In this document: positions 2,901 through 47,351 of the stretch, piece after piece
Layout: every line of letters starts with the position of its first letter
How positions within the stretch are numbered: the first letter of the stretch is position 1
DNA from: Haliotis rubra
Taxonomy: Eukaryota
NCBI RefSeq assembly: GCF_003918875.1
Contig: NW_025765476.1
Location: 1 to 64,000 of the forward strand
Length of the DNA: 64,000 nucleotides
Direction: 5' to 3'
Position numbers and translations under genes: made by a program
The notes under the pieces: generated by a model
Seen by the model: only the letters and a program-made list of their open reading frames with translations
Told to the model about the DNA's origin: nothing
Database searches by the model: none

Positions 2901-4214
2901 AATACCCGATGAAACGTAAACGGGCATGGCTAATGTATAGAGTCTATCTTCCAGTAATTATAACCCCACATATCCTACATGTGACCAGCTCGCGTTTTGG
3001 TGTAAAGCCTGTGTTAAAATTCGCTCCGAACATCTGAGTTTTATCATTTCTATAACTCCAGAAACTCAGGTGGGGAGACTGACAAAACAAAGAATTAGCA
3101 TGTGACGCGCGAACTTCGAGTTGATAAATACACCCCAACGCAATTTTTTTCGCTTATATCATCTTGTGGATCCCTCTCAGAATGTAAGCGAATATGTGTC
3201 GCAGTAAATGGTTAGTAGCGGGTGCATTTTGTGTGCAGAATTTTGTTAGTTGGCCATGATCAGCCAAATGAACGTCTCCGTGTTGGAGTTAAACTGTAGG
3301 TGGCGCTACCGGGATAGCAGCACAGACACGGTTCATTACCAGACCACAGACACTTTTATTAGTTTGATGAATATCGCGAGCACTCAGCAATATTCGTGCT
3401 ATATGGCGGTACACTTTTATTAGTGTATGAGCCACTCGGTCAAAAGTACAAGTGCCATAACAGAGTGGCCCATATAATTGCTTTTAATAAAGAACATAAA
3501 GAATAACAAAAGCAATTATATTTTCGAATTGATATACGGCTAAAGTTGGCAATAGCTGGTTAAATGTGTGTTTTGAAGGTAATTCTCGGTAACATTACTG
3601 AGCATGTTCTTTTTGCTTAATTTTTCTATAGCGATCACAATTAGTAGAAGTTACGGAACATGTGTTCAGTGACATTATTAACTTCACAATACAATGCATT
3701 TTCATATTTGTAGTAATTGATATGGAATCTCCCTTATAACACATTACTAACTCACCACAGTCTAGATAACACTATTATTCTTACTTTGTTGATATTGATA
3801 TAACATATGAATTGTTCACACATGATGAGAGCTCTTTAAACAAGGAATATGTAAACGTACAGGAACTATTTTGGAGTTTTGCATGCCACTCTTGTATCAA
3901 ACAATCTTTGTTTCGTCTTACAAGAAATTTAAAGCAATGCTGTTTGTCTCCAATCCCTGCTGTTTGTCTTCAACTCTGTGTCAGCTTCTACACGTAGTTA
4001 AAGTGTGGGAATATCTATTACAATTGAGGTATAGTTGCGGCATTATACTGGCATTGACAATATGCCACTGTTTACTATATAGGTACTTCTAAAATGTACC
4101 CCAGTCAACCAAGTTTAAAGTATCAAGTAACTACTGTTACCATAGTGACATGCATCCTACACCGATGAGGTGACGACGTCTGAATCTAGATAACCGACCT
4201 CCATAGATGGTAGG

Positions 4215-6175: not shown

Positions 6176-7544
6176 AATGTATGGGACTAATTAGTTTATG
6201 GTTCTTTGGTGTGTTGTGTAGGATGGTAGAAATAAATCCATTAAAAGTTCGATCATCCTCATTAAGTCATTCTTAAAGTGTATTTTGATCCTGCTATTTT
6301 GTTGTGTTGTGTGATAAGTCCTTCATTTTCTTCTTACGAGGGATCCTCAATAGTATGCTTGTACACCTTCACCGACACATACACCCTTGAAGCTCAAGCA
6401 GTAACGAAGAAATACATTTTACGATGTAATAAATGGAGCCACAGATGAATACAAAGCTATAATTACTAAAGGGATTTTTCGGTTATGAACTTAAAATAAT
6501 TAAAGCAATAAAATAATAAAACATCGATCAAACGTTGCTGCTTTCTATTATATTGTCGATAGGGTCCTACCAGTAATACGCAAAGGGAGGAACTAGTTGA
6601 TGAAAATCACTCGACCAAATTAAGTTGGAACCCTAACGATGTTGCCAGGCAATGGACCTTTGATTGGATGCTGCCGTGAGGTATTAAATGCAATTCGAGC
6701 TTTACAGTGTTGCATGATATAGAAACATTTAAACATGAATTGGTCACCCGCCGAGTCCACGCAATTATCGTGTGCTGATGATGGTTTGCCGAGACCCGCC
6801 GAGTTAATCCAGTGCGCCGATAAGTTGGTACTTGAGCTTTGACCTGCTGGAGTCCACGCACGCGAGTTACCTGAGTTGATTATTGAGTGTGCTGATGTTG
6901 GTACTTTGCTGGTGAAGGGCAGGGTGGCTTTCCATTCCTTTATATCATTTTGTGTGTTGGTGGTGCACCTCCTGGAAGAAACGTTAGGACCCTTCGCTGA
7001 TTTTGATTGCTTTGACACTTCAGTGAAGCGGAAGACTTTTGGATTGGTGTGTTTCCAAGAACTGTTCAATCTTCTTTCAAATCATTGTATCCAAACTGTG
7101 ATGTTAGCTTTTTTGTAAAGTTAAAGTTGAACATGCAAATCGATACAAATACTGCACTAGACGTACATACCGATTAGTCCTTATCACCTACGTCATCACT
7201 GTCAATATAACGTCTTGTACAGTTTGAACATGCACAAATGTGCTAAACGTATAACCCATTTGTCCAAATAATTTAAAACTGATTATATTTTGTAATCTTT
7301 AGTGGTGTTTTTCTTAACATGATGAGGGTACAATGTATTGCTGGAATATTGTAAAACGATGCTCATTCACTCGCTCACTCAAACCTAACAAGACGACTTG
7401 TACTGAATGTAACCACAGATATTTTCTAGCGGTTGACATTTTGTTCGAACTGTTTAAATTCCTGTACTCGGCAGAAAGTCGTTTCCCCGCTGTTTTATTA
7501 TTGATACTTTAAAGGCCAGACTATGCACGCAGACATGTACTTAA

Positions 7545-8724: not shown

Positions 8725-10270
8725 TACCACCATTATGCTCTTCCATCCATACCATGTTGGCATCCATTCCTCCAATATTCTGTGTGTTGTCCTTCACCAT
8801 CCATTCCTTCCTTCATTTCTTTATATTTATGGCTTCCATATTCTTCTCATGTCCTTTCTTTATCTATGTCTATATACCCTTTTCCCTTTCAGCAAATCCA
8901 TTTTCCTTCCTTTCCATTTCCACTTTCCATTTCTTTCCATTTCTTTTCACCATATGCCATGCACCATATCCACTCCATTATTTATTCCATATTATTCTTT
9001 ATTTTTCATGTCCATTATTTTCTTTTTATTTCCCTGTAGATGTCATGGCTTTTCGTGTGTGTTTATTCCTGTTTCTTCACTGCATTATTTATAATCCATT
9101 ATTCCTTTATTATTCCACTATCCTCCTTTTGCTACTGCCCATCCATATATGCGTTCCATTTCTGCCATTACCATTGGCTGTATCCATTATATTTATTCCA
9201 CTTGTTATTGCTGTCATATTTATTAAACTACATTGCCTTTGTCATTATACTCATGGTGTGTGCAGTGCCGTTCATTTCCGTTATCCTTGTGTCCCTTCTT
9301 ATTTATGCATTCATGTTATTTCCTTTGTTATTTATGTGTTTCTGTGTGTTCTTGCTGTGTCATTTTCTTCTGTCTATGAGTTATCCATGTTATCCATGTG
9401 TTGGCATCCACTTCCTTTGTGTCATATCCATGTCTATCAGATACACTGCCTCCAGTGTGGATCTATGGCTGTTATTCTGTCTGCTGTTATATGGCGTCGT
9501 TGATTCCTGTGTGCTGTGTTCTCTGTGTCATTCCGTGGATCCATATTTTGTGCTGTGCTGCAAGTTGTGTGTGTCCTTCCTTCTGTCCGTTCTGTCCATG
9601 TGTGTGTCCATGTGTTGTCCTGTGCTGTGCTGTCATGTTCCATGCTTTCGTTCCTTCCTGTGCCACGTGTTCCATGGGGTTTCCGTGGTTGTGTTCTGTC
9701 ATGGGCTGTGATTCTTTGCTGTGTCGTGTCTTCTTGTCGTGTGTCATGTGTGCTTCCACTCTTGTCACCATGCCTTCTGGCTGTGCATTTGTCTGTGTGT
9801 GTCCTGTGATTCCTGTGTCCATGTCCTTTGGGGTTATGGCTGCTGTGTCCGTTCATGTCCTCCTCGTTGGGGTGTGTGTCAGTGTGTGTGTGTGTGCTGT
9901 GGTTGATTGTCTTTCCTGTCATGGTCTCATGTGTTTCCTTTGTTGCATGTCCATGTCCTTCTGTGTGTTCCATGTGTCCTTTCTGTGTGTGGGTGTCAGT
10001 CAGTGTGTGGTGTGTGTCCTTTTCCGTGGTTGTTGGCCTGTGTGGTCTTCGTTGATTCTGGATGGTCCTGTGTGTTCCTGGGTCTTCTGATTCTGTCGTT
10101 ATCTGTCTGGTGACTCCTTCTCCTGTTGTGTGGTGTCCCTGTGTCGTGTCCGTGTTCATGTTCCTGTGTATGGGAGGCCACATTTGGCTGGGGCTTTCTT
10201 GTATCACCACCTTCATCTTGACTCCACAGGGCTGTTTCCTCTGTCTGGGAGATAAGATCCGGTCTGTGTC
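8725..10270 (-). pseudogene. Hidden B-type paralogue in garbled, A-depleted sequence
   Basis: Anchors collinear with gene B: 9281 ttatccttgtgtcccttctt ~19101; 9431 tgtctatcagat...gtggatct ~19320; 9538 gatccatattt ~19476; 9584 tgtccgttctg ~19569; exon-1 homologue accttcatcttgactccacagg at ~10209-10230; 3' UTR homologue 7950-8340 with polyA signal at 8047-8052. Confidence 0.75.
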
Positions 10271-10739
10271 CATCTTTTCATTTCCATTCCTTGTGCTGTG
10301 CAGTCTGCTAAGACCTCAGTAAGTTATAGTGTCCTTTGGGCTGGGCTCTGTCATCTCAGTGTCTCCTCGGCGTCCATCCATTCCTCCGTCGGCTCCTCCG
10401 TCCTCGGCTCCTCGTCATCCATGATCCTGTTTCCACTGTGCTTCACTGTTGTCCACCTCTTCTGCTTCTCCTGTTTATTTCTGCCTGTGCCTTGTGTTCC
10501 TGTCCTTCCACCTCTCTACCTCTGTTCTGCTGTGTGTCCACCTCCAGTTCTGTGTCCACCTCTTCTCCTGTTCCTGTCTACCTGTCTTTCTACCTCCACC
10601 TCGTTTCTATCCTGCCTCTGTCTGTTCTGTCCGTCTGTCCATTCTCTGTTCTGTCCAGTTCTACCTCTGATTATCCTGCCTCTTCTACCTCCTTCTCCTA
10701 CCTCTGTTCTATCAGCTTGATTTCTGTCCTTCTGCTGTT

Positions 10740-12010
10740 GTCATTCTTCCTCCTTCCACTCCTACCTCTGTTCTAATTCTATCCCAACTTCCTTTATTTC
10801 TACCCTACATCTTGCTCTGTCCTTCTACTGTTATCCCCTGCCTCTTCTCACTCCTTACTTCTCCTACCTCTGTTCCTACCCTATCCCAACTTTTATTTCT
10901 ACCTCTACATCTCCTGTCCTCTTCTACTGTTATCCCTGCCTCTTCTTCTTCTCACCTCTACTTCTCTATACCTCTGTTCTAATCTCTATCCCTAACTTTT
11001 ATTTCTACCTCTACATCTACCTGTCCTTCTAGTGTTATCCCCTGCTACTCACCTTCTTCTCCCACCCTGTTCCCAATCCTCATCCCAACTTTATTTCACC
11101 TCTACATCTACCTGTCCTTCTACTTGTTATCCCTGCCTCTTTCTACCTAATTCTACTCTCCCCCTGTGTCTCTAAAATCCTATCTCAACTTTTTATTTCT
11201 ACCTCTACACCTGCCTGTCCTTCTACTGTTATCCTGCCTCTTCTACTCAATTCTACTTTTCATACCCCTGTTCTATTCCTATCCCAACTTTTATTTCTAA
11301 TTCTACACCTGCCTGTGCTTCTACTGTTATCCCTGCCTCTTCTTTCTACCTCTACTTCTCCTACCCTTGTTCCAACCTCTATCCCAACTTTATTTTTTCT
11401 ACTTCTACACCTGCCTGTCCTTCTACTGTTATCCCTGCCTCTTCTACTACCTCTACTTCTCCTACCTCTGTTCTACCCTATCCCAACTTTTATTTCTACC
11501 TCTACATCTGCCTGTCCTTCTACTGTTATCCCTGCCTCTTCTTCTACCTCTACTTCTCCTACCTCTGTTCTACCTTATCTCAACTTTTTATCTTCCTTTA
11601 CACTCTACACCTGCCTGTGCTTCTACTGTTATCCCTGCCTCTTCTTCTACCTCTACTTCTCCTACCTCTGTTCGACCGTATCCCAACTTTTATTTCTACC
11701 TCTACATCTACCTGTCCTTCTACTGTTATCTCAGCCTCTTCTTCTACCTCTACTTCTCCTACCTCTGTTCTACCATATCCCAACTTTTATTTCTACCTCT
11801 ACATCTACCTGTCCTTATACTGTTATCCCTGCCTCTTCTTCTACCTCTACTTCTCCTACCTCTGTTCTACCCTATCCCAACTTTTATTTCTACCTCTACA
11901 TCTACCTGTCCTTCTACTGTTATCCCTGCCTCTTCTTCTACCTCTACTTCTCCCACCTCTGTTCTACCCTATTCCAACTTTTATTTCTACCTCTACATCT
12001 ACCTGTGCTT
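10740..12010. repeat. ~97-bp pyrimidine-rich tandem repeat, about 12-13 units (about 2-3 units at 21560-22090)
   Basis: Unit ctacctctacttctcctacctctgttctaccctatcccaacttttatttctacctctacatctacctgtccttctactgttatccctgcctcttctt; spacing 11821 to 11918 = 97. Confidence 0.9.
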
Positions 12011-12498
12011 CCTTTGTTTCTACTTCTGTTTCTTCTTCTGTTACAACTTCTCCTCCACTGCCTGTGCGTCTTCTTCTACGTCTTTTTCTTGTGTTCTACT
12101 TCTCCTCTACTTTGACTTCCGTTTCGAGTTCAGCATTCAACGTTTATACATTTGCCTCTACTTCTATGTCGTTATCTCTCCTTCTACTTCTTCCTCTACC
12201 TCCACTTCTAATTTTCATTCTTCCTCTACGTCTACTTCTACGCAACGATTATAATTCTTTTAAAGTGAAAACCCGTTTGTATTTTTCCGTGTGTTCCATA
12301 TGATAAGCGTTAGTTTGTAGGAAGAAACACGTTTCAGATTTAATAATCTGTGGATCACAATCGGACAAACTTCAATTAAGAAAGTATAATGTCTGATGTC
12401 TGATATAATGTGTTATACACATCAGTTCCTCCAGAACAACCAAGTAGACATAAGTGAAATACGAGTTTCACGCAAACATGCAGTGTTATAACCAATGA

Positions 12499-18541: not shown

Positions 18542-20653
18542 CTAGTAATACTGGTAGCCGCTCTTGGAGCCTCCGAAACCACCAGCAAGGCCACGGCCGT
18601 ATCCAACGCCGACGACGCCATTTCCGACTCCGAACCCCCCGAATCCCTTTCCGACACCAACTCCATGGCCGACACCAACGTCATGTCCAACTCCGAAGCC
18701 GTTGTTGTAGGGGGTTCCGTGTTGAGTGGCGGCGGCGTGGTTGGTAGCAGCGCCGTGTGCATTAGCATGGGCATTGGAATTGGAGCCATAGTTGTTGTGG
18801 GCGTAGTTGTTGAGGACGTTGGCGCGGGCAGCAGCAGCGTTGTTGTAGTCGTTGTATTTAGAAGCAGCGGCGTTGTTGCTGTCTCCGGCAGCTTTAGCAG
18901 CGCCCTGGCTGTAGTAGTTCGATTTCTTAGCAGCGTTGCCGTTGGCGGCCTGAGCGACGTCATTGTATTTGTAGGCGTTATCAGCGTTGTTGGCGGCGTA
19001 TTTGTCGTTGTTGTGGGCTGCTGCGTTGGCGGCGTCGTTGTAATACCTCTGAGCGTAGTTGTTGGCATTAGAGTGGGCAGCGTTAGCGTTCTGGGCAAAG
19101 TTATCCTTGTAGTCCTTCTTGTTGTAGTTGAGGCGTTCGTAGTTGTTACCGCCGGCGTTGTTGTGGTGGTGGAACTTCTTGACCAGATGATGTTTCTTGG
19201 CAGCGTCGTTGTAATTGCGTCTGTAGTTGTCCTTGGCGTAGGCAGAGTTGGCACTGTCGGCGGCAGCAGCTTGAGCATTGTAAAGGTTGGCAGCATCAGC
19301 ACCGGCGTGGTCGTATCCGTGTCTGTCAGATGCAGCAGCATCGGTGTTGGATCTGTAGGCGTTGTTCTTGTCAGCAGCAGCACCGGATTTGTAGTAGTCG
19401 TTGCCTTGAGCGTTGTTGTAGCCGTTCCTGTGGTAGGCAGCGCCGGCATTGTTTCTCTGGTAATCATTCAGGTGAGATCCATATTTACCATTCCTGACAT
19501 TGGCAGCATTGGCAGCGGAATCATAATGGTTGGCGTGTTGACCCTGGGCGGCGTTGTCGTACAGACCGTGTCCGTTCTGACCATATTGTTGACCATATTG
19601 CTGACCGTATTGTTGACCATATTGTTGACCTTTGCCGTAACCGTTGCCGTAGTTGTTCCCGTAACCGTTGCCTTTTCCGACACCTCCAGTGCCTACGACA
19701 CCAGAGAATCCGCGTGTTCCGTAGACGCCGTGGTTGCCGTGTCCAGCGAGGTTGTGTGCAGCTTGTGCAGCGGCGTTAGCGACGCTGTTTCTGTCGTAGA
19801 CGGCGTTCTTTTTGGCGAAGTTGTCGTACTGATCTTTGGAAGCGTCGTGAGCGTTGTCGTAGTATTTGTTGCTTCCAGCAGCTTCGCTCAACTTGGCAGC
19901 AGCGGCGTGGTTAGCAGCACCGTTGTTGGCAGCGTGGCTGGTTGCGGCACCGTATTTACCGTTTCCGTATTGCTTTGCTGCAGCGCCATGTCCGTACCCA
20001 TTGCCCTTCTGAGCGTGTGCGGCATCGGCGGCGTATTTTTTGTTGGCGTGGTCGCGGCTGGCGTAGTTGGCGGCTCCACTGTGATCACGGTAGTCGCCGA
20101 GGTTGTGAGCACTGCTTGTGTCAAGGATTTCGTAGTCACCATCCTCGTTGGAGTTTTTGTTGTATTTCTTGTCGAAGCCGTAGTTGACATCGGTGTTGAA
20201 AACGTCCCCCTTGTTGTAGTAGTTGTTGTTGGCGTGGTTGTTGTAAGCAGCAGCTCTTGCGGCGTTGTCTTTCCTGTCGTAGTGGTTGGCGGCGGCGTCG
20301 TGGTAGCCGGCTTTGTTGGCGTGTCCGGCGTCACCGTAAGCGTTATTGGCGTGGGCGGCGGCCTTGTTTCCGTAATAGTTGGAGGCAGCGTCTCCCTTGG
20401 CGCCGGCTTTATCAGCTGCTTTGTAGTAGTTGCTGCCGTGGCTGGCGTAGTTGTTGGCAGCTTTGTTGTAGTTGTTGGCGGCGTTGTCGTATGTGTTGTA
20501 TTTCTGGTCAGTGTTTTGATTAGCGTATTGTCCTTTCCCGTAGTTGTTGACGCCGGCTGACAGGTGGCCGTTGTTGGCGGCGGCGCCATAGTTGTCGAGG
20601 TAGTCGCATGTGGCAGCAGCCACACAGATGGCGATGACGGCAATGGAGAAACT
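18542..20653 (-). CDS. Gene B exon 2: secreted Ala/Asn/Gly/Tyr/His-rich structural protein (705 aa with exon 1; MK|SFSIAVIAICVAAATC signal peptide)
   Basis: Open 703-codon exon after acceptor gttttcAG (20655-20654); hydrophobic signal peptide; strong codon bias (AAC, TAC, GCC); polyA signal at 18193-18198; paralogous to C-F. Confidence 0.93.
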   Translation of the reverse strand, partial: SFSIAVIAICVAAATCDYLDNYGAAANNGHLSAGVNNYGKGQYANQNTDQKYNTYDNAANNYNKAANNYASHGSNYYKAADKAGAKGDAASNYYGNKAAAHANNAYGDAGHANKAGYHDAAANHYDRKDNAARAAAYNNHANNNYYNKGDVFNTDVNYGFDKKYNKNSNEDGDYEILDTSSAHNLGDYRDHSGAANYASRDHANKKYAADAAHAQKGNGYGHGAAAKQYGNGKYGAATSHAANNGAANHAAAAKLSEAAGSNKYYDNAHDASKDQYDNFAKKNAVYDRNSVANAAAQAAHNLAGHGNHGVYGTRGFSGVVGTGGVGKGNGYGNNYGNGYGKGQQYGQQYGQQYGQQYGQNGHGLYDNAAQGQHANHYDSAANAANVRNGKYGSHLNDYQRNNAGAAYHRNGYNNAQGNDYYKSGAAADKNNAYRSNTDAAASDRHGYDHAGADAANLYNAQAAAADSANSAYAKDNYRRNYNDAAKKHHLVKKFHHHNNAGGNNYERLNYNKKDYKDNFAQNANAAHSNANNYAQRYYNDAANAAAHNNDKYAANNADNAYKYNDVAQAANGNAAKKSNYYSQGAAKAAGDSNNAAASKYNDYNNAAAARANVLNNYAHNNYGSNSNAHANAHGAATNHAAATQHGTPYNNGFGVGHDVGVGHGVGVGKGFGGFGVGNGVVGVGYGRGLAGGFGGSKSGYQYY

Positions 20654-20896
20654 CTGAAAACAGAATATACACACTTGCTTTAACTTTGAATATCTGTTTG
20701 AGTGGCTCTCAGAATCTACAAGCATTTAATTAAAAATTACAATTCAGGTATCACCTGTACAAAAGCCGCTGATGGGTATGTCGCCATCATTCACATCATC
20801 AGTGTTTATAGTATGGGGGGGAGATAATTTGCATACACATTTTGAAACTGAGCGAACTACTGAAATAGGAAGCAAGACGTTTCAACTGTATCTTAC

Positions 20897-26850: not shown

Positions 26851-26856
26851 ATGCAG
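26851..26856 (+). CDS. Gene C exon 1 coding part (ATG CAG, MQ) followed by GTGAGA donor
   Basis: About 80 bp downstream of the TATA; phase 0 into exon 2; same layout as the paralogues. Confidence 0.85.
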
Positions 26857-27434
26857 GTGAGATACTTTTACATCTCTTGAAGTAAAATGCGGAACAGGAT
26901 TTGACCAAAATGCGTCTGCTTGCTTTGTATTTTGTATTAAGAAACGAAATAGATTTTAACAAAAATAAATCTGCTGTTCATGCTTGGGTTAGAAACCAAA
27001 AATCATTTGACACTGAAAAGCTTCGGAGTGAGAAACGTAACTTGATTTGAAACTCAAAGTCAGAAACGAAAAATCATTACACATTGATGATCTTATGGTA
27101 TATTGTAGTAGGAAACGAACTATGATTGACAAAAAGTGCGCTTGATAAATATAAGTTGCAAGAACGAAATGTTATTCAGCAATGCAATTCTTTGTGAAAG
27201 AGAAAAAAGAACCCGAATCAAATTAAACGCAGTAGTATGAAATATACGCGAATAAACCAGTCTTTGTATATGGTAGAACTTACAGGACTAAAATTCAGAT
27301 TCCTTCATGTTCGTTCGGGACAAACGAAATATGTCTGCAGCGCATATTTTCAAAAAAAACAAAGTTTGAGGGTCAAGTAAAATATGAATAAACAAACCCA
27401 TAATTTGACCAACGTTCAACAATGTGTTTTTCAG

Positions 27435-29582
27435 TGTCTCCTCGTCGCCGTCGTCGCTCTGTGCGGCATTGTCGTATCAAGCATGTCCTACAACAACAAC
27501 TTTGGCGCTGCCAGACAGCTTGGCCACGTTGCCTCGGGTCTCAACGACTACGGCAAGGGACAATATGGAGGCGCCGAGGGTCTTCGTCGTTACGGAAGCT
27601 ACAACAAAGCGGCCAATGTCAACAATAAAGCCGCCGACAACTACGCCGCCCGCGGTAACAACTACCACAAGGCTGCTGACCATGCCAGCGCAAAGGGGGA
27701 CGCCGCCTCCAACTACTACGGCCACAAGAACGCCGCTCACGCTGACAAAGCCTCCGGTGCTGCCGCTCTGGCCAACAAAGCCAACTACCACGATGCTGCT
27801 GCCACAAAGTACGCAAGGAAGGACGGTGCATCCAAAGCTGCTGCCAACAACGACTACGCCAACAACAACTACTACAGAAAGGGGGACGTCTACAACACTG
27901 GAGTCCACTACGGCTTCGACAAGAAGTATAACAAGAACGCCGATGAGGGCGGTGACTACGAAATTCTTGATGACAGCTCTTCCCACAACCTCGACGAATA
28001 CCGTGATAAGAGCAAGGCTTACAGCGCTGCCAACAGCGACCACGCCGCCAACAAATATGCTGCTGATCGCTCTCATGCTCTGAAAGACAGCAAGTACGGT
28101 AAGGACGCCAGCAAGGCTCAATACGGTAATGGTAAATACGGCTCTGCTGCTAGTCAGGCTGCCAAGAACGGTGCTGCCAACCACGGTTACGACGGCAAAC
28201 TTAACGAAGCTGCCGGAAGCAACAAATACTACGCCAACGCCCACGATGCTGCCGTCGACAAACATGACGAGTTCGCTGGCAAGAACGCCTACTACAACAG
28301 AAGGAACGCTGCTAATGCTGCTGCACAGGCTGCCAAAAACATCGCCGGATATGGAGGTCTCGCCCATGGTGCTCATGGCGTCGCTGGTGGTGCTGGTTTC
28401 CAAGGTGTATCTGGAGGTGTTCTCGGCGGAGTAGGATACGGCAAGGGCTACGGTAACCAGTACGGCCGTGGATACAACAATGGCTACCTTGGACATGACG
28501 CACACAACAACAAGTACTACGGTGCTGCCGTCCAAGGTCAACACGCTAACCACTTTGATGGTGCTTCCAATGCCGCCCTCGCCAAAACCGGAGGATACGG
28601 ATCTAAGCTGGGTGACTCAAGCCGAAACAAGGCCGGTGCCGCCTATCACAGAGACGGCTACAACAACGCTCACGCCAATGACTACTACAAGTCTGGAGCT
28701 GCAGCTGCCAACAACAACGCCTACAGATACAATAAGGACGGTGCCGCTGCCGACAACCATGGATTTAGTCACTCCGGTGCCGACGCTGCCAGTCTCTATG
28801 ACAACAAAGCCGCCGCTCACGACAATGCCAAATCTGCCTACGCCAAAGACGACTACAGACGTAAGTACAACGAGGGTGCCAAGAAACACCATCTGGTCAA
28901 GAAGTTCCACCATCATTCTAAAGCCGGCGGCAACAACTACGAGCGTCTCAACTACGACAAGAAGGACTACAGGGACAACTTTGGACAGAACGCCAATGCC
29001 GCTCATGCCAACGCAAAGAAATACTCTCAGAACCTGTACCAGAACGCTGCCAATGCCGCCGCCCATAACAACGACAAATATGCGGCCAACCACGCCAACA
29101 AAGCCTCCAACTACTACGATGCTGCTGATGCTGCCAACGGCAACGCCGCAAAGAAATCCAACTACTACAACAAAAACGCCGCTGCCTCTGCTGGTGCTGC
29201 CAACGCTGCTGGCAAATCCTATTATGGCAACCACAACAAAGCCGCTGCTACGTATGCCAAGGGTCTCAACGACTACGCCCACAACCAGTACGGCAACAAC
29301 GGTCACGCCTACAACGCCAAACATGCTGCTGCCAACCACGCCGGTGCCGCCCACAACACCCCAAGCTACGGTTACGGTGTGGGACACGGACTTGGAGGAG
29401 CTGGACGTGGAGTTGTCGGCCTTGGTCACGGCGTCAGTGGATACGGTAATGGTTTCGGCAGAGGAGTTGTCGGCCTTGGAAATGGCGTTGGTGGATTCCG
29501 TAACGGAGTTGCCGGCCTTGGTAGAGGCTTTGGCTCTGGTCAAAGTTATGGAGGTTACAACCAGTACCCTTACTACGGGTAA
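27435..29582 (+). CDS. Gene C exon 2: secreted Ala/Asn/Gly/Tyr/His/Lys-rich structural protein (717 aa total)
   Basis: Acceptor tttttcAG at 27433-34; signal peptide MQCLLVAVVALCGIVVSS; open 715 codons; AATAAA at 30107-30112. Confidence 0.95.
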   Translation, partial: CLLVAVVALCGIVVSSMSYNNNFGAARQLGHVASGLNDYGKGQYGGAEGLRRYGSYNKAANVNNKAADNYAARGNNYHKAADHASAKGDAASNYYGHKNAAHADKASGAAALANKANYHDAAATKYARKDGASKAAANNDYANNNYYRKGDVYNTGVHYGFDKKYNKNADEGGDYEILDDSSSHNLDEYRDKSKAYSAANSDHAANKYAADRSHALKDSKYGKDASKAQYGNGKYGSAASQAAKNGAANHGYDGKLNEAAGSNKYYANAHDAAVDKHDEFAGKNAYYNRRNAANAAAQAAKNIAGYGGLAHGAHGVAGGAGFQGVSGGVLGGVGYGKGYGNQYGRGYNNGYLGHDAHNNKYYGAAVQGQHANHFDGASNAALAKTGGYGSKLGDSSRNKAGAAYHRDGYNNAHANDYYKSGAAAANNNAYRYNKDGAAADNHGFSHSGADAASLYDNKAAAHDNAKSAYAKDDYRRKYNEGAKKHHLVKKFHHHSKAGGNNYERLNYDKKDYRDNFGQNANAAHANAKKYSQNLYQNAANAAAHNNDKYAANHANKASNYYDAADAANGNAAKKSNYYNKNAAASAGAANAAGKSYYGNHNKAAATYAKGLNDYAHNQYGNNGHAYNAKHAAANHAGAAHNTPSYGYGVGHGLGGAGRGVVGLGHGVSGYGNGFGRGVVGLGNGVGGFRNGVAGLGRGFGSGQSYGGYNQYPYYG

Positions 29583-31682
29583 ACGGTCATACTCGGATTT
29601 CAGTGTGAAAGAGACTTCGCTATTGAAAGCGTAAATGATCAGCGTTGTGTGTTCAAGATATGCCATCTGTATCAGATCCCGAGGTTGTCATGAAGTACTT
29701 CTTTAATATGTGTTTTGAAGCAATTGTTGAAACGGGCTTTTATAATTTTATCGTCTTATGAGCAAAATTTCATTAAATCAAGTTTAGATGTAGCGATTGT
29801 ATGTTAATTATACACAATGAATTGTAGACTTTTTAAATGTTGATAAATATGTTTAGGGCAAGATACGTTACATTGATGTTGACCTAGCTGGCATTCGACA
29901 GTACTTAAGGGACATATGGGAAGAGTCTTTGCTCGGTGGTTTCTGTGTGTGAAACAGTTTTCTTTTCTTTTTTCAGTGTTGTTGATGATAATTCATATTG
30001 TCAACATAATGCATGATCTTAGCTTAGGTAAATAACAGTACTTTCATGACAACTTCAGATTCTTGTACATGTCTTTGTGTAAGGTGCCCTTTTTTTACCT
30101 ATCTCCAATAAATATTTTCTTACCAGAAAAATGAATGCTTTGTTATTTTTACTGGGGAAAAGCTTGCTACTTAACATATTGTTTGTATTAGTTTCAACAG
30201 AATAATTAAAAGTACTCTCGTGTCACAGGATTATGTTGACTGATTTCTAGAAGTCCATTTATTTAGTTGTTGGAGATACTTGGTATTCTGTTGTAATACT
30301 AATTCTTTGTTATCATCGCGATTCCACTTGCCCTAAATACACCCTAGAGCAGACAACATTAATAAGAAAAACAATAATGTTTAAAGGTTTTGAAATATAA
30401 AGACGACATGAACGGTTCTAAGCTTAGTTTGACCACTATCTGAAACATGGTGGTGGGGTGGTTAAACCGTCGAGTCCGCTCGTCACGCTGATAGCCTTGG
30501 TCGATTGACCACAATGGGTACAATATGTGGTGTTCACGATACGTTTCCCTGGTCTAGTGGATGGGGCGTTTACCCGGAGAACTTAAGGTACTTGGTTCGA
30601 TCCTAGGTTTCATGCCAAAAGAAGGACGTTCTTGCTGTTACCCTTTCGAAAGGCTGAGTCAGCATAATGTGTTTGAGTGGTGGTGTTCATGATAAACTGA
30701 GATATGACCACGGTATCTCCGTGGCTGCACTAAAACAAAACTGCATAACTCTGGATTAGCACACACAGCCACCCACACATGTGCAGATACGTCGATAAAT
30801 GGAATAGACTTGAATGCAACGTTTAACCCCATTTCATCTTAATCACCCCCAGTCCCCTCAGCCATAGCGCTGGAATGTTTCTACAAGCGGCACAAAACTA
30901 TACTCATTTACTTTAACTTGGTTTCTGCTTTATCATTATTTTGAGGCGGTTTTGCGTTGAAGGTTCACAATCTGGGGATGGTTTGGCCTCCTGAAGAGTG
31001 CAATTATGCTTAATGTTTAAAACATGTAAGTGTTCCATTATTTCGTTGATTTCCCATTTACTCTAGTGTGGATTATGATAAACGTCTTAATGTTTGTCCT
31101 GACGCTAAAAACTGCCGGATGTATGCACTAGAAAGACTTTGACCAAAGACTTATAACAAACGTTATCCAAAGTTTACTATGCTCATTACAGTCGCTGAAA
31201 CACTGCAAATCTATTTCCCGAAACAGAACTATGATACCCGTATAACAAACGTCATCATCGAAAAAACATTATTGTTTGTGTTATTTTTAGCCCCATCTTG
31301 TACTTTCATTCGCCCAGCAGCTGATTTTTCAATGATTAATTTCAAGGTTAATTTTCCTCTCCTTTATACGACTGATCATGTGGATCATTTCTGACCAATC
31401 ATCACAAATGGGCTCTTTAAATCGTGGACAACGGTTCTTTCTTAGAAGAAGCTACTTTCACTTTCACAGTTGCCTTTATAACAATTAGAAGTTATACTAT
31501 TCAGTACGGCTGCACTAAACAAATCATTACATTCTCGTTCCTTTTGATACAAAATGCAAAACACGAATATTTTTTAAATGAAAGGAATCTAAGTACATTT
31601 GTTTCATGAGTGAGTTGGGTTTATTGCCGCTTGAACTATATTCAAAGCGACATCAGGGCATATCAGTTCATCGTGGAAGGAA

Positions 31683-34020: not shown

Positions 34021-36198
34021 CTAGTAGTAGGGATAGTGTCCCACCCCTGTGTTCACTCCGAACCCTCCCACAGCACCAAATCCCTTCCCAAGGCTAGAAA
34101 CTCCCTTTATAACGCCTGCAGCGTTGTTGAAGCTACCGACGTGGTTTCCAAGACCGACAACTCCTTTACCCACACCGACCCCGTTACCGAAGCCGCGAAA
34201 GCCGTGACCAAGGCCGACAACTCCATGTGCAGATCCTCCGTGTCCGACACCGTAACCGTAGCTTAGGGTGTCGTGGGTGGCATCGGCATGGTGGGCAGCA
34301 GCACCGTGAGCGGCGTTGTAGGCGTGGCCGTTGTTACCGTACTGGTTATGGGCGTAGTCGTTGAGACCCTTGGCATACGTAGCAGCGGCGTTGTTGTGGT
34401 TGTCATAATAGGATTTGCCAGCAGCGTTGGCAGCACCAGCAGAGGCAGCGGCATTTTTGTTATAGTAGTTGGATTTCTTTGCGGCGTTTCCGTTGGCAGC
34501 ATCAGCAGCATCGTAGTAGTTGGAGGCTTTGTTGGCGTGGTTGGCAGCATATTTGTCGTTGTTATGGGCGGCGGCGTTGGCAGCGTTCTGGTACAGGTTC
34601 TGAGAGTACTTCTTTGCGTTGGCATGAGCGGCATTGGCGTTCTGTCCAAAGTTGTCCCTGTAGTCCTTCTTGTCGTAGTTGAGACGCTCGTAGTTGTTGC
34701 CGCCGGTTTTAGAATGATGGTGGAACTTCTTGACCAGATGGTGTTTCTTGGCACCCTCGTTGTACTTACGTCTGTAGTCGTCCTTGGCGTAGGCAGATTT
34801 GGCATTGTCGTGAGCGGCGGCTTTGTTGTCATAGAGACTGGCAGCGTCGGCACCGGCGTGACTGAAGCCATGGTTGTTGGCAGCGGCACCGTCCTTGTTG
34901 TATCTGTAGGCGTTGTTGTTGCCAACTGCAGCTCCAGACTTGTAGTAGTCGTTGGCGTGAGCGTTGTTGTTACCGTCTCTGTGATAGGCGGCACCGGCCT
35001 TGTTTCGGCTTGAGTCACCAAGTTTAGATCCGTATCCTCCGGTTTTGGCGACGGCGGCATTGGCAGCACCATCATAGTGGTTAGCGTGTTGACCTTGGAC
35101 GGCGGCACCGTAGTACTTGTTGTTGTGTGCGTCATGTCCCAGGTAGCCATTGTTGTATCCGTGGCCGTACTGGTTACCGTAGCCCTTGCCGTATCCTACT
35201 CCTTTGCCGAGAAGACCTCCAGACACACCTAGAACACCAGCACCACCAGCGACGCCATGGGCACCATGGGCGAGACCTCCATATCCGGCGATGTTTTTGG
35301 CAGCCTGTGCAGCAGCATTAGCAGCGTTCCTTCTGTTGTAGTAGGCGTTCTTGCCAGCGAAGTCGTCATGTTTGTTGACGGCAGCATCGTGGGCGTTGGC
35401 GTAGTATTTGTTGCTTCCGGCAGCTTCGTTAAGTTTGCTGTCGTAACCGTGGTTGGCAGCACCGTTCTTGGCAGCGTGGCTAGCAGCAGAGCCGTATTTA
35501 CCGTTACCATACTGAGCCTTGCTGGCGTCCTTACCGTACTTGCTGTCTTTCAGAGCATGAGATCGATCAGCAGCATATTTGTTGGCGGCGTGGTCTCTGT
35601 TGGCAGCGCTGTAAGCCTTGTTCTTATCACGGTATTCGTCGAGGTTGTGGGAAGAGCTGTCATCAAGAATTTCGTAGTCCCCGCCCTCATCGGCGTTCTT
35701 GTTATACTTCTTGTCGAAGCCGTAGTGGACTCCGGTGTTGTAGACGTCCCCCTTTCTGTAGTAGTTGTTGTTGGCGTAGTCGTTGTTGGCAGCAGCTTTG
35801 GAGGCATCGTCCTTCTTTGCGTACTTTGTGGCAGCAGCATCGTGGTAGTTGGCTTTGTTGGCCAGAGCGGCAGCACCGAAGGCTTTGTCAGCGTGAGCGG
35901 CGTTCTTGTGGCCGTAGTAGTTGGAGGCGGCGTCTCCCTTTGCGCTGGCATGGTCAGCAGCCTTGTGGTAGTCGTTACCGTGGGCGGCGTAGTTGTCTGC
36001 GGCTTTGTTGGCGGCATTGGCGGCTTTGTTGTAGCTTCCGTAACGACGAAGACCCTCGGCGCCTCCATATCGTCCTTTGCCGTAGTCGTTGAGACCCGAG
36101 GCAACGTGGCCAAGCTGTGCGGCAGCTCCAAAGTTGTTGTTGTAGGACATGCTGGATACGACAACGCCGCACAGAGCGACGAAGGCGACGAGGAGACA
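34021..36198 (-). CDS. Gene D exon 2: secreted Ala/Asn/Gly/Tyr/His/Lys-rich structural protein (727 aa total)
   Basis: Acceptor tttttcAG at 36200-36199; CLLVAFVALCGVVVSS signal peptide followed by the 709-aa ORF; highly similar to C/E/F; candidate polyA signal at 33613-33618. Confidence 0.95.
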   Translation of the reverse strand, partial: CLLVAFVALCGVVVSSMSYNNNFGAAAQLGHVASGLNDYGKGRYGGAEGLRRYGSYNKAANAANKAADNYAAHGNDYHKAADHASAKGDAASNYYGHKNAAHADKAFGAAALANKANYHDAAATKYAKKDDASKAAANNDYANNNYYRKGDVYNTGVHYGFDKKYNKNADEGGDYEILDDSSSHNLDEYRDKNKAYSAANRDHAANKYAADRSHALKDSKYGKDASKAQYGNGKYGSAASHAAKNGAANHGYDSKLNEAAGSNKYYANAHDAAVNKHDDFAGKNAYYNRRNAANAAAQAAKNIAGYGGLAHGAHGVAGGAGVLGVSGGLLGKGVGYGKGYGNQYGHGYNNGYLGHDAHNNKYYGAAVQGQHANHYDGAANAAVAKTGGYGSKLGDSSRNKAGAAYHRDGNNNAHANDYYKSGAAVGNNNAYRYNKDGAAANNHGFSHAGADAASLYDNKAAAHDNAKSAYAKDDYRRKYNEGAKKHHLVKKFHHHSKTGGNNYERLNYDKKDYRDNFGQNANAAHANAKKYSQNLYQNAANAAAHNNDKYAANHANKASNYYDAADAANGNAAKKSNYYNKNAAASAGAANAAGKSYYDNHNNAAATYAKGLNDYAHNQYGNNGHAYNAAHGAAAHHADATHDTLSYGYGVGHGGSAHGVVGLGHGFRGFGNGVGVGKGVVGLGNHVGSFNNAAGVIKGVSSLGKGFGAVGGFGVNTGVGHYPYY

Positions 36199-37107
36199 CT
36201 GAAAAACATAGATTATCCTGATAATTGCTGATCTAACGATGTTGTATTTTCAAAATCTTCAACGACGGAATTTTCCATATTGAGAAGCTTGAGACGAACT
36301 CGATTCCCAATTTCGGTACAACGTACGTGTGAGGCCCTACATTGGTGTCCCAAACTTCACTGTGTCTTGATTTCTGGTAAAGGGTAAAACCTAGTTTATA
36401 TGTAGTACTAAATATTTCTGATATTAAACCGAAATAAAACACGTATATTCGAGAATAGAGTATGTCCATTTTACACAAGTTATAAAAAACGAAGATGAAT
36501 GACTTATTACGAGTAACGCCAACTTGGACTGCTTCGTGCATGTATCAACATACATCTATTACACCTTTCAACAATACAGTTTAAGTGACCAAATAGAATA
36601 CAAACGAACACAAGATTATGGAAAAGGGGTATGTTGACAAAAATTCGTGTAAAACTGGAGATAAAGAGAGCCGGATGTTTAGAAGAATCAGACAATTTTG
36701 TTTGCGCACCTGGAAGGACAAAATGCATTTCGTATTTTCCTTGAAATGGAATCTAGAAATTAGAAATTAAAGGCGATAGCTACTCATGGGATAATATCTA
36801 TGACGTGCACACACGCCTTTTCACCCATAAGAAATATACCTGTATAGTCTGTAGTATATCTTTATTATATTTAAAAACTAGTCATTTTCAATTCAGAATT
36901 AACTTCTGACGTTTTTAAATACGGGAACGAAAAGAAAGGTTCTATTTCATAAAAACACAAAGCCAGTGGCTCAGAGTTATCCGCCCTTGGTTTGCACTTC
37001 AATCATGAAAAACAATGCATGATAGAAGTCAATCCAGGCAAAGTCGTTCCTGACTCAAACCCAAACATTATAGGACTGTATCAACTGAAAACCCATATTT
37101 ATGAGAC

Positions 37108-43877: not shown

Positions 43878-46001
43878 TTACCCGTAGTAAGGGTACTGGT
43901 TATAACCTCCATAGCCTCTACCAAGGCCGGCAACTCCGTTCCCGAATCCACTGACGCCGTTACCAAGGCCGGCAACTCCGTTCCCGAATCCACTGACGCC
44001 GTTACCAAGGCCGACAACTCCACGGCCAGCTCCTCCAAGTCCGTGTCCGACACCGTACCCGTAGCTGGGGGCGTTGTGGGCGGCACCGGCGTGGTTGACA
44101 GCAGCACCGTGAGCGACGTTGAAAGCGTGACCGTTGTTACCGTACTGGTTGTGGGCGTTGTCGTTGAGGCTCTTGGCCTTGGCAGCAGCGGCGTTGTTGT
44201 GGTTGTAATGAAGAGACTTGGCGGCAGCGTTGGCAGCACCAGCAGAGGCAGCGGCGTTTTTGTTGTAGTAGTTGGATTTCTTTGCGGCGTTTCCGTTGGC
44301 AGCATCAGCAGCATCGTAGTAGTTGGAGGCTTTGTTGGCGTGGTTGGCCGCATATTTGTCGTTGTTATGGGCGGCGGCATTGGCAGCGTTCTGGTACAGG
44401 TTCTGAGAGTATTTCTTTGCGTTGGCATGAGCGGCATTGGCGTTCTGTCCAAAGTTGTCCCTGTAGTCTTTCTTGTCGTAGTTGAGACGCTCGTAGTTGT
44501 TGCCGCCGGCCTTAGAATGATGGTGGAACTTCTTGACCAGATGGTGTTTCTTGGCACCCTCGTTGTACTTTCGTCTGTAGTCGTCCTTGGCGTAGGCAGA
44601 TTTGGCATTGTCGTGAGCGGCGGCTTTGTTGTCATAGAGACTGGCAGCGTCGGCACCGGCGTGACTAAATCCATGGTTGTTGGCAGCGGCACCGTCCTTA
44701 TTGTATCTGTAGGCGTTGTTGTTGGCAGCTGCAGCTCCAGACTTGTAGTAGTCGTTGGCGTGAGCGTTGTTGTAGCCGTCTCTGTGATAGGCGGCACCAG
44801 CCTTGTCTCGGCTAGAGTCAGCCAGTTTAGATCCGTATCCTCCAGATTTGGCAAGGGCGGCATTGGCAGCACCATCATAGTGGTCAGCGTGTTGACCTTG
44901 GGCGCCGGCATCGTAGTACTTGTTGTTGTGTGCATCATGTCCGAGGTAGCCATTGTTGTATCCGTGGCCGTACTGGTTACCGTAGCCCTTGCCGTATCCT
45001 ACTCCTTTGCCGAGAAGACCTCCAGATACACCTAGAACACCAGCACTACCAGCGACGGCATGGGCACCATGGGCGAGACCTCCATATCCGGCGATGTTGT
45101 TGGCAGCCTGTGCAGCAGCATTAGCGGCGTTCCTTCTGTTGTAGTAGGCGTTCTTGCCAGCGAACTCGTCATGTTTGTTGACGGCAGCATCGTGGGCGTT
45201 GGCGTAGTATTTGTTGCTTCCGGCAGCTTCGTTGAGTTTGCCGTCGTAGCCGTGGTTGGCAGCACCGTTCTTGGCAGCCTGACTAGCTGCAGAGCCGTAT
45301 TTACCGTCACCGTATTGAGCCTTGCTGGCGTCCTTACCGTACTTGCTGTCTTTCAGAGCATGAGAGCGACCAGCAGCATATTTGTTGGCGGCGTGGTCTC
45401 TGTTGGCAGCGCTGTAAGCCTTGTTCTTATCACGGTATTCGTCGAGGTTATGGGAAGAGCTGTCATCAAGAATTTCGTAGTCACCGCCATCATCGGCGTT
45501 CTTGTTATACTTCTTGTCGAAGCCGTAGTGGACTCCGGTGTTGTAGACGTTCCCCTTTCTGTAGTAGTTGTTGTTGGCGTAGTCGTTGTTGGCAGCAGCT
45601 TTGGAGGCATCGTCCTTCCTTGCGTACTTTGTGGCAGCAGCATCGTGGTAGTTGGCTTTGTTGGCCAGAGCGGCAGCACCGGAGGCTTTGTCAGCGTGAG
45701 CGGCGTTCTTGTGGCCGTAGTAGTTGGAGGCGGCGTCTCCCTTTGCGCTGGCATGGTCAGCAGCCTTGTGGTAGTCGTTACCGTGGGCGGCGTAGTTGTC
45801 GGCGGCTTTGTTGGCGGCATTGGCCGCTTTGTTGTAGCTTCCGTAACGACGAAGACCCTCGGCGTCTCCATATTGTCCCTTGCCGTAGTCGTTGAGACCC
45901 GAGGCGACGTGGCCAATCTGCCTGGCAGCGCCAAAGTTGTTGTTGTAGGACATGCTGGATACGACAACGCCGCACAGAGCGACGACGGCGACGAGGAGAC
46001 A
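43878..46001 (-). CDS. Gene E exon 2: secreted Ala/Asn/Gly/Tyr/His/Lys-rich structural protein (709 aa total)
   Basis: Acceptor ttttcAG at 46003-46002; signal peptide CLLVAVVALCGVVVSS; intact ORF; polyA signal at 43456-43461. Confidence 0.95.
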   Translation of the reverse strand, partial: CLLVAVVALCGVVVSSMSYNNNFGAARQIGHVASGLNDYGKGQYGDAEGLRRYGSYNKAANAANKAADNYAAHGNDYHKAADHASAKGDAASNYYGHKNAAHADKASGAAALANKANYHDAAATKYARKDDASKAAANNDYANNNYYRKGNVYNTGVHYGFDKKYNKNADDGGDYEILDDSSSHNLDEYRDKNKAYSAANRDHAANKYAAGRSHALKDSKYGKDASKAQYGDGKYGSAASQAAKNGAANHGYDGKLNEAAGSNKYYANAHDAAVNKHDEFAGKNAYYNRRNAANAAAQAANNIAGYGGLAHGAHAVAGSAGVLGVSGGLLGKGVGYGKGYGNQYGHGYNNGYLGHDAHNNKYYDAGAQGQHADHYDGAANAALAKSGGYGSKLADSSRDKAGAAYHRDGYNNAHANDYYKSGAAAANNNAYRYNKDGAAANNHGFSHAGADAASLYDNKAAAHDNAKSAYAKDDYRRKYNEGAKKHHLVKKFHHHSKAGGNNYERLNYDKKDYRDNFGQNANAAHANAKKYSQNLYQNAANAAAHNNDKYAANHANKASNYYDAADAANGNAAKKSNYYNKNAAASAGAANAAAKSLHYNHNNAAAAKAKSLNDNAHNQYGNNGHAFNVAHGAAVNHAGAAHNAPSYGYGVGHGLGGAGRGVVGLGNGVSGFGNGVAGLGNGVSGFGNGVAGLGRGYGGYNQYPYYG

Positions 46002-47351
46002 CTGAAAATACATAATTATGAATAAACTGAAGTTTAAAGCCTGTTGGTAAGATGGTACACTTGATGATGGTTTGAAAAAAACTGTTTGGAATCATCATTG
46101 CAGCTTTTCACGTTTTACTCTTACAAATTGCTTTTGCAATTCTTCATTGAATTCTAAGGCACATATCCATATTGCTCCATTGAATTTTCTAGTTATTAAT
46201 ACACACTGTATGTAAGACTGATTTTGTTATTATCAAGTAAGAATCTTGTGTTGAAGTGATCATTGTTTCTGGATGCCACCATCATTCAAGCCACATCACA
46301 GTAGGGAATACTCATTGAGTTTCACTCATCGTACAGATTCGAACCCATGCGTCTACTGAACGTGCCAACGCTTTAACCATTAACCTATCCCATTATACTT
46401 TAATGTGTGATGTTGATGTACAGTATAGACATGTGTATCACTTATAACTGCACTTTAACTTTTAATTTAATTATGAAAATGCCGAAACGCTTTAGACATG
46501 AATACTGGAAAGTGTTTTTCATAGCACGATCTTACATTTACTTTACTTCAAGGATGTGGATATGTTTACAGATAAAATCGATTTGAGAAAGAGTGTGGTA
46601 AGATCATCATTATCTTTAAGCAATCAAGCGTAGACTGAAGAAACCTTTCACAGAGAAATCGCATCCTGTACGCTTATTATACACCAGGAGGCCACCGGCC
46701 GTTCTCTAGTTCCAAACATTATTGCACTATCATGGGATATCGCCAAATCTCATAGATAAATGAACAGAATGACACTGGTACCTACATAACCATAAGGGCA
46801 AAAAGACCTCATATGTCGCCAGTTTCATAATTGCAATTCCTAAGACTTGATCCAGTTATGTGAATGCAAAGCGAAGAGTTTATTTCTTGTCATAAAACAG
46901 TTACAAAACATGCACAATAATTTTGTGAACAAAATGTATTTTGTAAGTTTCATAAAGAAACATACAGAAAGTACTGTTTATGTTCCAGGTTATAAAATCT
47001 ACTGAAAGGAAGTAACTTTTATAGAAAACCCGGTTCTACTGTACATTTCATACATCGTTAAAATATTTAGTTCTGTATTTAGTCTCCCCTTTTCTTTATT
47101 AGATAAAATAGATTATTGGTCGAATATGTTGTGGGTCGAGTAAACATCATATATATGGGATTAAAATGCACCGTTACAATAAGGAATCAAGTGAGAGTAT
47201 AATCTGATGTAATGTTTTAATCTATATTTAAGCCATGTTTTCATTCACTATAGTCACCAGAAACTGCACACGGGTGTAGTGTCAGTTTGAATTTCTCCGT
47301 TAAGACTACAGTGCCAAATGATATGCAGTCATATTTGTGTTTAGAAGGTCT

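Follow-up and report, generated by a model that had tools for sequence, protein, structure and literature searches.

The window analysed here, 64,000 nucleotides of the abalone Haliotis rubra (positions 1 to 64,000 of the forward strand of contig NW_025765476.1), carries five paralogous genes, listed at 18542-20725(-), 27384-29582(+), 34021-36150(-), 43878-46013(-) and 60372-62492(-) and designated B, C, D, E and F in that order. Judged from their sequences, the products of all five are secreted structural proteins of about 70 kDa, which belong to an uncharacterised family found throughout the gastropods. An earlier inspection of the letters of the window (hereafter the sequence-only reading) had proposed that such proteins are giant self-complementary β-hairpins. 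Our main finding is that the two long arms of these proteins match each other in one antiparallel register, residue by residue, and that this match has been kept across gastropods; very probably, the arms pair physically.

Gene C is interrupted close to its start. A TATA-like element (tttataagg) lies about 85 nucleotides upstream of the coding part of exon 1, which consists of ATG CAG (26851-26856, forward strand, as is all of gene C) and is followed by a GT donor. A phase 0 intron of 578 nucleotides (gtgag...ttttcag, 26857-27434) precedes the large second exon (27435-29582), and comparison of the paralogue sequences showed that its splice acceptor is common to all five. The second exon opens with the remainder of a signal peptide, CLLVAVVALCGIVVSS (27435-27482), which has a hydrophobic core; the precursor begins MQ-CLLVAVVALCGIVVSS, a signal peptide of 18 residues, and homologues begin with MKLL followed by hydrophobic residues. 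The Met codon at 27483, from which the sequence-only reading had counted, is therefore not the initiator: with a two-codon first exon, an intron and a signal peptide upstream, residue 1 approximates the mature N-terminus. We nevertheless number residues from Met27483 throughout.

The mature protein has 699 residues, of which 21% are Ala, 15% Gly, 13% Asn and 10% Tyr, with a further 8% Lys, 6% Asp and 6% His; it contains neither Cys nor Trp, whose absence from the arms had been observed before, and its Pro residues are limited to positions 627 and 696. Proteins of this type comprise, in order, a signal peptide, arm 1, a Gly-rich hinge, arm 2 and a Gly-rich tail. Arm 1 (residues 29-282, 27567-28328) is a gapless block in 14 family members. 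It is followed by a length-variable hinge rich in Gly, Tyr and His (residues 283-346, 28329-28520), within which residues 291-346, the Gly-rich linker noticed previously, are 36% Gly. Arm 2 (residues 347-603, 28521-29291), gapless over 347-582, mirrors arm 1 at i+j=632, i and j being the numbers of the two residues of a pair. A C-terminal stretch and a Gly/Val/His/Tyr-rich tail (residues 604-699, 29292-29582 with the TAA stop) complete the protein. The two-arm layout of the sequence-only reading is supported, with matched halves of about 255 residues each. Each arm has a conserved core. That of arm 1 (residues 131-172, 27873-27998), where the pairing windows are strongest, includes YGFDKK, a GG loop, DYEILDD and SHxLDEYRD, and its residues Y143, K147, K148, G157, H168 and L170 are invariant in the family alignment; that of arm 2 (residues 460-501, 28860-28985) includes KKHHLVKKFHHH, GG and NNYERLNYDKKDY, with G482, G483, E487 and L489 invariant. 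Both the acidic motif DEGGDYEILDD and the basic motif KKHHLVKKFHHH, which had been described as mirroring each other, are found in gene C.

All antiparallel registers of the gene C protein were scored by counting K, R and H as positive and D and E as negative, and by subtracting unfavourable from favourable pairs. The three best registers were 632 (21 favourable and 2 unfavourable pairs), 634 (16 and 4) and 630 (18 and 7). The 19 pairs that the sequence-only reading had listed at i+j=634 are each present, but the score of that register (12) is matched by 12-21% of shuffled sequences when the maximum over registers is taken. The score of 19 at 632, on the other hand, was matched by none of 1000 global shuffles, and by 0-1 of 500 shuffles, even when residues were moved only inside 5-residue windows. 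There is thus a clear peak over shuffled controls, at 632; register 634 sits at +2 from it and is, at the level of the family, a genuine satellite. Two pairs recognised beforehand as unfavourable, R174:R460 and D88:D546, are indeed so at 634, but at 632 they give way to the favourable pairs E172:R460 and H86:D546.

The same scan was applied to relatives, in which the equivalent register is given by the start of YGFDKK plus the start of GGNNYERL plus 5. For paralogue B, the best register is 714, the equivalent of 632 in C, and the four coupled changes between B and C that had been reported are readable from the alignment. Among 15 family members scanned singly, the equivalent register was the best of all in 13 (10 of 11, then 3 of 4). 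The relatives scanned are 24-36% identical to C and represent five gastropod lineages; in most members the score at the equivalent register exceeds every one of 1000 shuffles, with single-protein scores that go up to 28 and 32 where the best shuffles reach 11-15, and many of the favourable pairs of the relatives occur at positions where C has none. Three observations count on the opposite side. The best register of protein P0020 from the sea slug Elysia crispata is the -2 satellite and not the equivalent register; P0005 from Gigantopelta aegis, which is flooded with His, gives no register signal; and in C and B significance depends on counting His as cationic, whereas most other members give a significant signal with K and R alone. 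P0005 is the sole full-length member devoid of register signal, and its tail consists of a different repeat, (ASRGFAPNGF)n; in this protein the fold may have been lost or the chemistry may have changed.

Alignment of the family strengthened the contrast between registers. In the first alignment, the charge score was 225 at 632 and 129 at 634, against -23±36 for other registers; with 15 sequences, 303 net opposite-charge cells were counted at 632, against -28±37, with a maximum of 72, elsewhere. Each quarter of the arm adds to the signal (41, 78, 42 and 64), and the windowed pairing signal extends from about residue 25 to 289. Parallel offsets, scored as a control, reached at best 89, which is within noise, and, in normalised units, fold-back within an arm gave a weak score of 6 and the inter-arm register one of 19. 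At offset 0, that is, at 632, opposite charges are in excess (z=9.3) and like charges avoided (z=-4.5 for +/+ and z=-2.4 for -/-). Charge is not the only property involved: aromatic residues face Gly in 96 cells against 33±10 expected (z=6.5) and never face each other (0 cells against 24 expected), while aliphatic:aliphatic (z=4.6) and aliphatic:aromatic (z=3.8) pairs are enriched. Seven aromatic:Gly column pairs, 61:571, 79:553, 131:501, 149:483, 157:475, 205:427 and 219:413, are kept in nearly all species. Enrichment of Ala:Ala pairs, by contrast, is diffuse, extending from offset -3 to +3, and probably reflects mirrored Ala-rich zones and not contacts.

Paired columns also change together, as had been anticipated for mollusc homologues. 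Both charge orientations are found in 12 column pairs at 632, compared to 2.1±1.4 (maximum 6) in other registers: pair 135:497, for example, is D:R, D:K, then K:E, then R:D across species, and further swaps occur at 95:537, 242:390 and 152:480. Pair 161:471 shifts from I:L to E:K to Y:V. Once conservation was removed, the mean cross-sequence correlation of charge between mirrored columns was -0.176 at offset 0 (z=-6.8), with satellites at +2 (z=-5.2) and -2 (z=-4.0); in the same test, offsets ±1, ±3 and ±4 were at background level (|z|≤1.4). Side-chain volumes anticorrelate as well, with z=-2.3 at offset 0 and z=-3.4 at +2. These figures must be read with the reservation that 15 sequences from few clades do not provide phylogenetically independent statistics for individual pairs. 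Length is conserved to the residue: no indel was found in residues 29-282 and 347-582 of C (490 positions, 14 sequences), over an arm tree with a total length of about 8 substitutions per site. Changes in length are confined to the tails and to the hinge, where they exceed 40 residues, so that the distance from motif to motif, 298-341 residues, varies through the hinge alone.

It is conceivable that these are disordered proteins that form a coacervate or a matrix, the mirror being a matter of blockwise charge patterning or of conserved motifs of opposite charge. Such proteins would fit the low-complexity composition rich in Ala, Gly, Asn and Tyr, the very low confidence of AlphaFold and the failure to find Pfam or PDB relatives (see below), as well as the fact that the signal peaks around the two conserved motifs. 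However, indels normally accumulate freely in low-complexity regions that are disordered, while here the arms have remained free of indels next to a variable hinge and variable tails. Moreover, the signal is exact to the residue, adjacent odd offsets being at or under background; it is carried by all four quarters of the arm; it is abolished by shuffling inside 5-residue windows; it persists in the cross-sequence correlation from which conservation was removed; and it includes charge swaps. We therefore regard disorder as very improbable, in agreement with the sequence-only reading, which had argued that the protein is not a disordered low-complexity chain.

Even less credit can be given to the idea that the arms are tandem duplicates of one unit, an arm plus a Gly-rich segment, whose complementarity would be a by-product of a basic-to-acidic organisation of the unit. 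A Gly-rich segment does follow each arm, KKY-x6-GG-x-YEIL locally resembles KKF-x6-GG-xx-YERL, and the two halves match at E=1e-27 in BLAST without correction; but the match is gone once composition is corrected for (E=5.8), the comparison of the arm-1 and arm-2 profiles by hhalign yields a probability of 0.5% (E=0.11), and a dipole motif cannot explain coupling and covariation 100 residues or more away from it. A duplication of the arms is thus not supported. An inverted repeat in the DNA was also considered as the source of the mirror and rejected: only seven arms of chance size (15-21 nucleotides) were present, none of which links the two protein arms, and such a repeat would be unsuited in any case, because reverse-complement codons do not give acid:base pairs.

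The residue-exact signal, the covariation, the lack of indels and the clean controls together argue for a physical, register-specific antiparallel contact between the arms, which we hold to be very probable. Our favoured account, to which we assign a probability of roughly 0.6 as a whole, is that gene C-type proteins form a fold-back rod made of two arms zipped in register. The secreted chain would fold back at its Gly-rich hinge; the core motifs, YGFDKK...GG...DYEIL facing KKF...GG..NYERLNY, would nucleate the pairing and set its register as a small β-ladder, or 'clasp'; and zipping would proceed through some 20-40 inter-arm ion pairs and 7-14 contacts in which an aromatic residue is received by a glycine. 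The hinge loop and the C-terminal tail, both sticky and rich in Gly, Tyr and His, would come to lie at opposite ends of the rod, where they could serve its assembly, end to end or laterally, and cross-linking through Tyr and His.

Covariation cannot tell contacts within a chain from contacts between chains, and arm 1 of one molecule could instead pair with arm 2 of another, in an antiparallel dimer or in a head-to-tail polymer, giving filaments or sheets in which the hinge is a flexible spacer. Such strand exchange would be an advantage in a material that forms fibres, the variation of the hinge by more than 40 residues implies that no precise turn is needed, and the packing of the AlphaFold monomer is not confident (pTM 0.18). 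Nonetheless, both arms are found on one chain and in the same order in every complete member, single-arm entries being partial gene models or ones with a frameshift; the hinge, with its 50-60 or so Gly-rich residues, leaves ample room for fold-back, which would be favoured kinetically; and the second preferred register that a multi-stranded array needs was not seen. Interchain pairing thus appears unlikely, and pairing within one chain probable.

As for the geometry of the arms in the fold-back rod, β-type pairing over most of the length falls slightly short of an even chance, and helical arms held by a β clasp come somewhat behind; the remaining odds go to a mixed or switchable structure. The lattice of contacts deduced from the alignments points, at least for the central third, to an extended pairing of the β-ladder kind; in the core (about residues 126-190 paired with 442-506), a β-ladder is most probable. 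Indeed, as in a ladder, coupling is confined to offsets 0 and ±2, with a period-2 alternation. Coupled positions show windowed power at period 2 (z≈3, p=0.004-0.008), and their even-minus-odd-lag autocorrelation of 0.116 (p=0.0012) was reached by none of 110 control registers; the autocorrelation is positive at every even lag, and zero or negative at lags 3, 7 and 11. Helical periods of 3.33-3.75 residues had no power in the same windowed test (z from -0.9 to 0.1). A parity walk over the whole arm is weaker than the windowed and autocorrelation versions (p=0.08). Along the whole arm, the aromatic:Gly columns favour odd positions (12 of 14, p=0.013). No intra-arm pattern of i to i+4 ion pairs was found in the family alignment, and Gly and Asn make up 21-25% of the abalone arms.

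Several features speak against β structure. Val, Ile and Thr are very scarce, so that the composition is unlike that of a classical β-sheet. Mean Chou-Fasman propensities are 1.0-1.06 for helix against 0.87-0.92 for strand in all members. The hydropathy and charge of arm 1 repeat at 3.5-3.67 residues (z≈3), and the arms may therefore still be helical; a period of 2 is absent from the residue properties of both arms. Both arms show in addition an unexplained period of 4.5-5 residues (z 3-4.6), a sign that some of the periodicity in residue properties may go back to ancient short repeats. At residues 168-214 the eye picks out a helical 'stripe' with a spacing of 3.67, which the windowed-power test did not support. 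Finally, we know of no solved structure with an isolated two-stranded ribbon near this length.

AlphaFold2 was run on C and on P0004 of Batillaria attramentaria, with alignments of 14 and 18 rows, and only the secondary-structure strings were usable: pLDDT was 37 and 41, pTM was 0.18, and no tertiary packing was confident. Most of each arm is drawn as helix in both proteins, with a pLDDT of 30-50. Strands are restricted to the core. In C, 136-148 pair with 486-496, with a bridge at 160/472, all mirrored exactly at sum 632; in P0004, 113-116 pair with 428-431, at a sum of 544, its equivalent register. Of the antidiagonal that had been expected near 634, the models thus show small β-ladders at 632 in the core, at low confidence and between arms drawn mostly helical, and we take them as weak evidence for either geometry.

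With the same pairing and register, helical arms would produce a hairpin of about 38 nm, an antiparallel two-helix coiled coil or 'Alacoil'-like structure that is β only at the clasp, in which the ±2 ion pairs would be e-e' and g-g' contacts and offset 0 would correspond to a-d' layers. This is a minority option, although a serious one. The AlphaFold helices of C are mirror-symmetric about 632 (H31-130/H500-619, H169-214/H428-465 and H222-288/H348-408), and those of P0004 are alike. The helix propensities and the arm-1 periodicity of apolar and charged residues just mentioned fit this geometry, as do the pairing of large with small residues and the lack of aromatic:aromatic pairs, which suit face-to-face packing of helices; about 26% of positions are coupled, near 2/7, and the Ala:Ala enrichment, broad as it is, goes in the same direction. 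On the other side, a 3.5-3.7 period is missing from the coupled positions themselves (z≈0), which are not positively autocorrelated at lags 3, 7 and 11; charge covariation is nil at ±1, ±3 and ±4, and i to i+4 ion pairs within an arm are not patterned; the predicted helices have a pLDDT of only 30-50, and the 21-25% of Gly and Asn in the abalone arms is far above the content of the long coiled coils known to us. The extreme version of the β alternative, a two-stranded antiparallel ribbon that is hydrogen-bonded without interruption over about 255 residue pairs and 85-90 nm, with ion pairs and aromatic-over-glycine contacts on both faces and a pH-sensitive His/Asp zipper in abalone, is likewise a minority option. 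From the β-ribbon of the sequence-only reading we retain the single locked antiparallel register and the ladder-like coupling; composition, arm-1 hydropathy and AlphaFold favour helices.

Histidine takes part in 12 of the 21 ion pairs of the abalone cluster. Given this proportion, and since K and R alone do not give significance in C and B, the abalone zipper should be sensitive to pH or to metals. It would be tight at the acidic pH of the secretory pathway, and would loosen, or turn to metal binding, at the pH of seawater.

Sequence searches showed that the family spans Vetigastropoda, Patellogastropoda, Neomphalina, Caenogastropoda and Heterobranchia. Its members are P0007 and P0015 of Haliotis cracherodii and H. 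rufescens (annotated as sericin 1-like and filaggrin-2-like), LOTGIDRAFT_238000 and 238001 of Lottia gigantea (P0006/P0008, hypothetical protein), P0010 of Patella vulgata (uncharacterized protein), P0001 and P0005 on the same scaffold of Gigantopelta aegis (keratin type I cytoskeletal 9-like and filaggrin-2-like), P0003 and P0004 of B. attramentaria (hypothetical protein), P0013 of Pomacea canaliculata (fibroin heavy chain-like) and P0020 of E. crispata (hypothetical protein). A profile search of a set of 5.8 billion proteins yielded no new members, low-complexity words having swamped the candidates, while a search restricted to the core motif added four. One further entry, P0012, is a single-arm member of 318 amino acids filed as 'Enterococcus faecium, partial' on a contig of 993 bp; it is almost certainly a gastropod contamination of a bacterial assembly. 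The tree of the arms separates two old subfamilies, both present in abalone and Gigantopelta, and a caenogastropod/heterobranch group. One subfamily, that of the window cluster, is rich in His, Asn and Tyr, and the other, that of Haliotis P0007, in Gln, Lys and Glu. The consecutive locus numbers of the two subfamilies in Lottia suggest an old tandem duplication that preceded the vetigastropod/neomphaline split.

The keratin-, filaggrin-, sericin- and fibroin-like names reflect composition only. The intermediate filament (IF) identity implied by the name of P0001 was rejected, as Pfam found no IF rod domain and a signal peptide is present. The S100-fused filaggrin type (P0005, P0015) was rejected as well: Pfam found no S100 domain, and instead of long tandem repeats there are only short degenerate families. 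Neither are P0007 and P0013 silks of the sericin or fibroin kind, as near-identical repeat arrays are lacking and two unique arms align column by column across species; the direct repeats of gene C are 60-80% similar echoes of codon bias with irregular spacing. No Pfam domain was detected at E≤1 in eight family members, a sequence search with the family profile found no relative in the PDB, and Foldseek with the P0004 model against the PDB, as well as the ESM Atlas, returned no match or no usable match. A literature search with accessions, locus tags, automatic names and motif strings produced nothing relevant to the family, and a paper on the radula transcriptome gave no lead to the producing tissue. 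The suggestion that the family might be undescribed was thus borne out. The motifs YGFDKK, NNYERL and KKFHHH are absent from the shell-proteome supplements of H. laevigata (PMC6003135). This absence, along with differences in composition and in peptides, excludes identity with the abalone protein GAAP (GAAP_HALAI). Adult E. crispata has no shell; the presence of the family in this species and the absence of its motifs from the H. laevigata shell proteome argue against a dedicated role in the shell matrix.

The four other genes of the window lie on the reverse strand. The second exon of B (18542-20653) is a divergent copy, 62-64% identical to that of C, and those of D (34021-36198), E (43878-46001) and F (60372-62526) are 92%, 93% and 94% identical to it. 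Paralogue F has one extra A near 62443 (AGACAAGCTT within 62390-62550, reverse strand, where C and D read AGAC-AGCTT). The extra base falls at about codon 12 of the mature protein and throws the signal peptide out of frame; F is either a young pseudogene or affected by a sequencing error. A fragment at 5-616 (…ERLNYNRKDYKDNFAQNANAA…, forward strand), on the left edge of the window, is frameshifted and corresponds to the arm 2 and tail of a B-like protein; it is probably a decayed sixth copy, and the cluster probably continues, or once continued, beyond that edge. In each paralogue all six frames are open for 220-630 codons (18665-20560, 27477-28553, 28617-29666, 34273-35013, 35257-36231 and others); this is due to a strongly biased codon set (GCY, AAC, TAC, GGY) and gives no evidence for overlapping genes. 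Elsewhere in the window, CT-rich simple-sequence blocks at 4000-6200 and 10000-12300, with a GC skew of -0.79 and -0.53 and an extreme AT skew, yield long spurious ORFs rich in Ser, Leu and Pro.

These observations indicate that an apparently disordered secreted protein can hide a long-range self-complementarity that is exact to the residue and locked by evolution, and that a simple antidiagonal scan is enough to detect it from sequence. A mislabelled gastropod family thereby gains a concrete and testable structural model, and provides a clean system for studying how 'zippers' of salt bridges and size complementarity fix a register over hundreds of residues. If the pairing is of the β type, the architecture would be without precedent among solved structures: a new fold class, a gastropod-wide building block of extracellular nano-rods and a natural design for rigid protein rods of about 90 nm. 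Helical arms would make it a secreted analogue of SMC-type arms with a poor core. The replacement of Lys and Arg by His in the abalone cluster suggests a zipper switchable by pH or metals, which is of interest for biomaterials.

Among known systems, the arms of SMC, Rad50 and MukB and the hairpin of colicin Ia are similar in that antiparallel segments of a few hundred residues are held in fixed register, with a hinge at the turn; in SMC-type arms, too, indels must be matched on both arms. Those proteins are, however, intracellular or toxins; their head and hinge domains are globular and their cores clearly heptad-based, whereas the gene C family is secreted, turns through a Gly-rich loop and has an interface made mostly of ion pairs and aromatic-in-glycine contacts. 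It shares with antiparallel coiled-coil hairpins (SMC-like or Alacoil) the fixed register but not the 3.5-3.67 interface period: its coupled positions have neither a heptad nor a hendecad period, and no sequence or profile relationship exists. With β-hairpins and ladders, including the 'aromatic rescue of glycine' and the polar zippers of Perutz, it has in common a constant i+j with ±2 coupling of period 2, cross-strand ion pairs and aromatics opposite Gly. Known β-hairpin strands, though, measure about 5-30 residues; the present ones would have about 255, are poor in β-branched residues and are predicted as β at the core only, with low confidence there too. GAAP is likewise a secreted low-complexity protein of abalone with a similar-sounding composition, but it is Ala/Gly/Ser-rich with a pI of 12, and its peptides, such as AFASAQASAEASVSAVR, are unrelated. 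Keratins and other intermediate filaments, the coiled coils of whelk egg capsules, squid suckerins and silks resemble the family as secreted or structural material formers in which a rod is flanked by Gly/Tyr(/His)-rich segments; they are parallel dimers or strings of many short β modules and not one self-complementary fold-back, and the gene C family has no IF rod domain, S100 domain or silk-type tandem repeats. The family is undescribed, and its architecture is at least a variant form of fold-back antiparallel rods.

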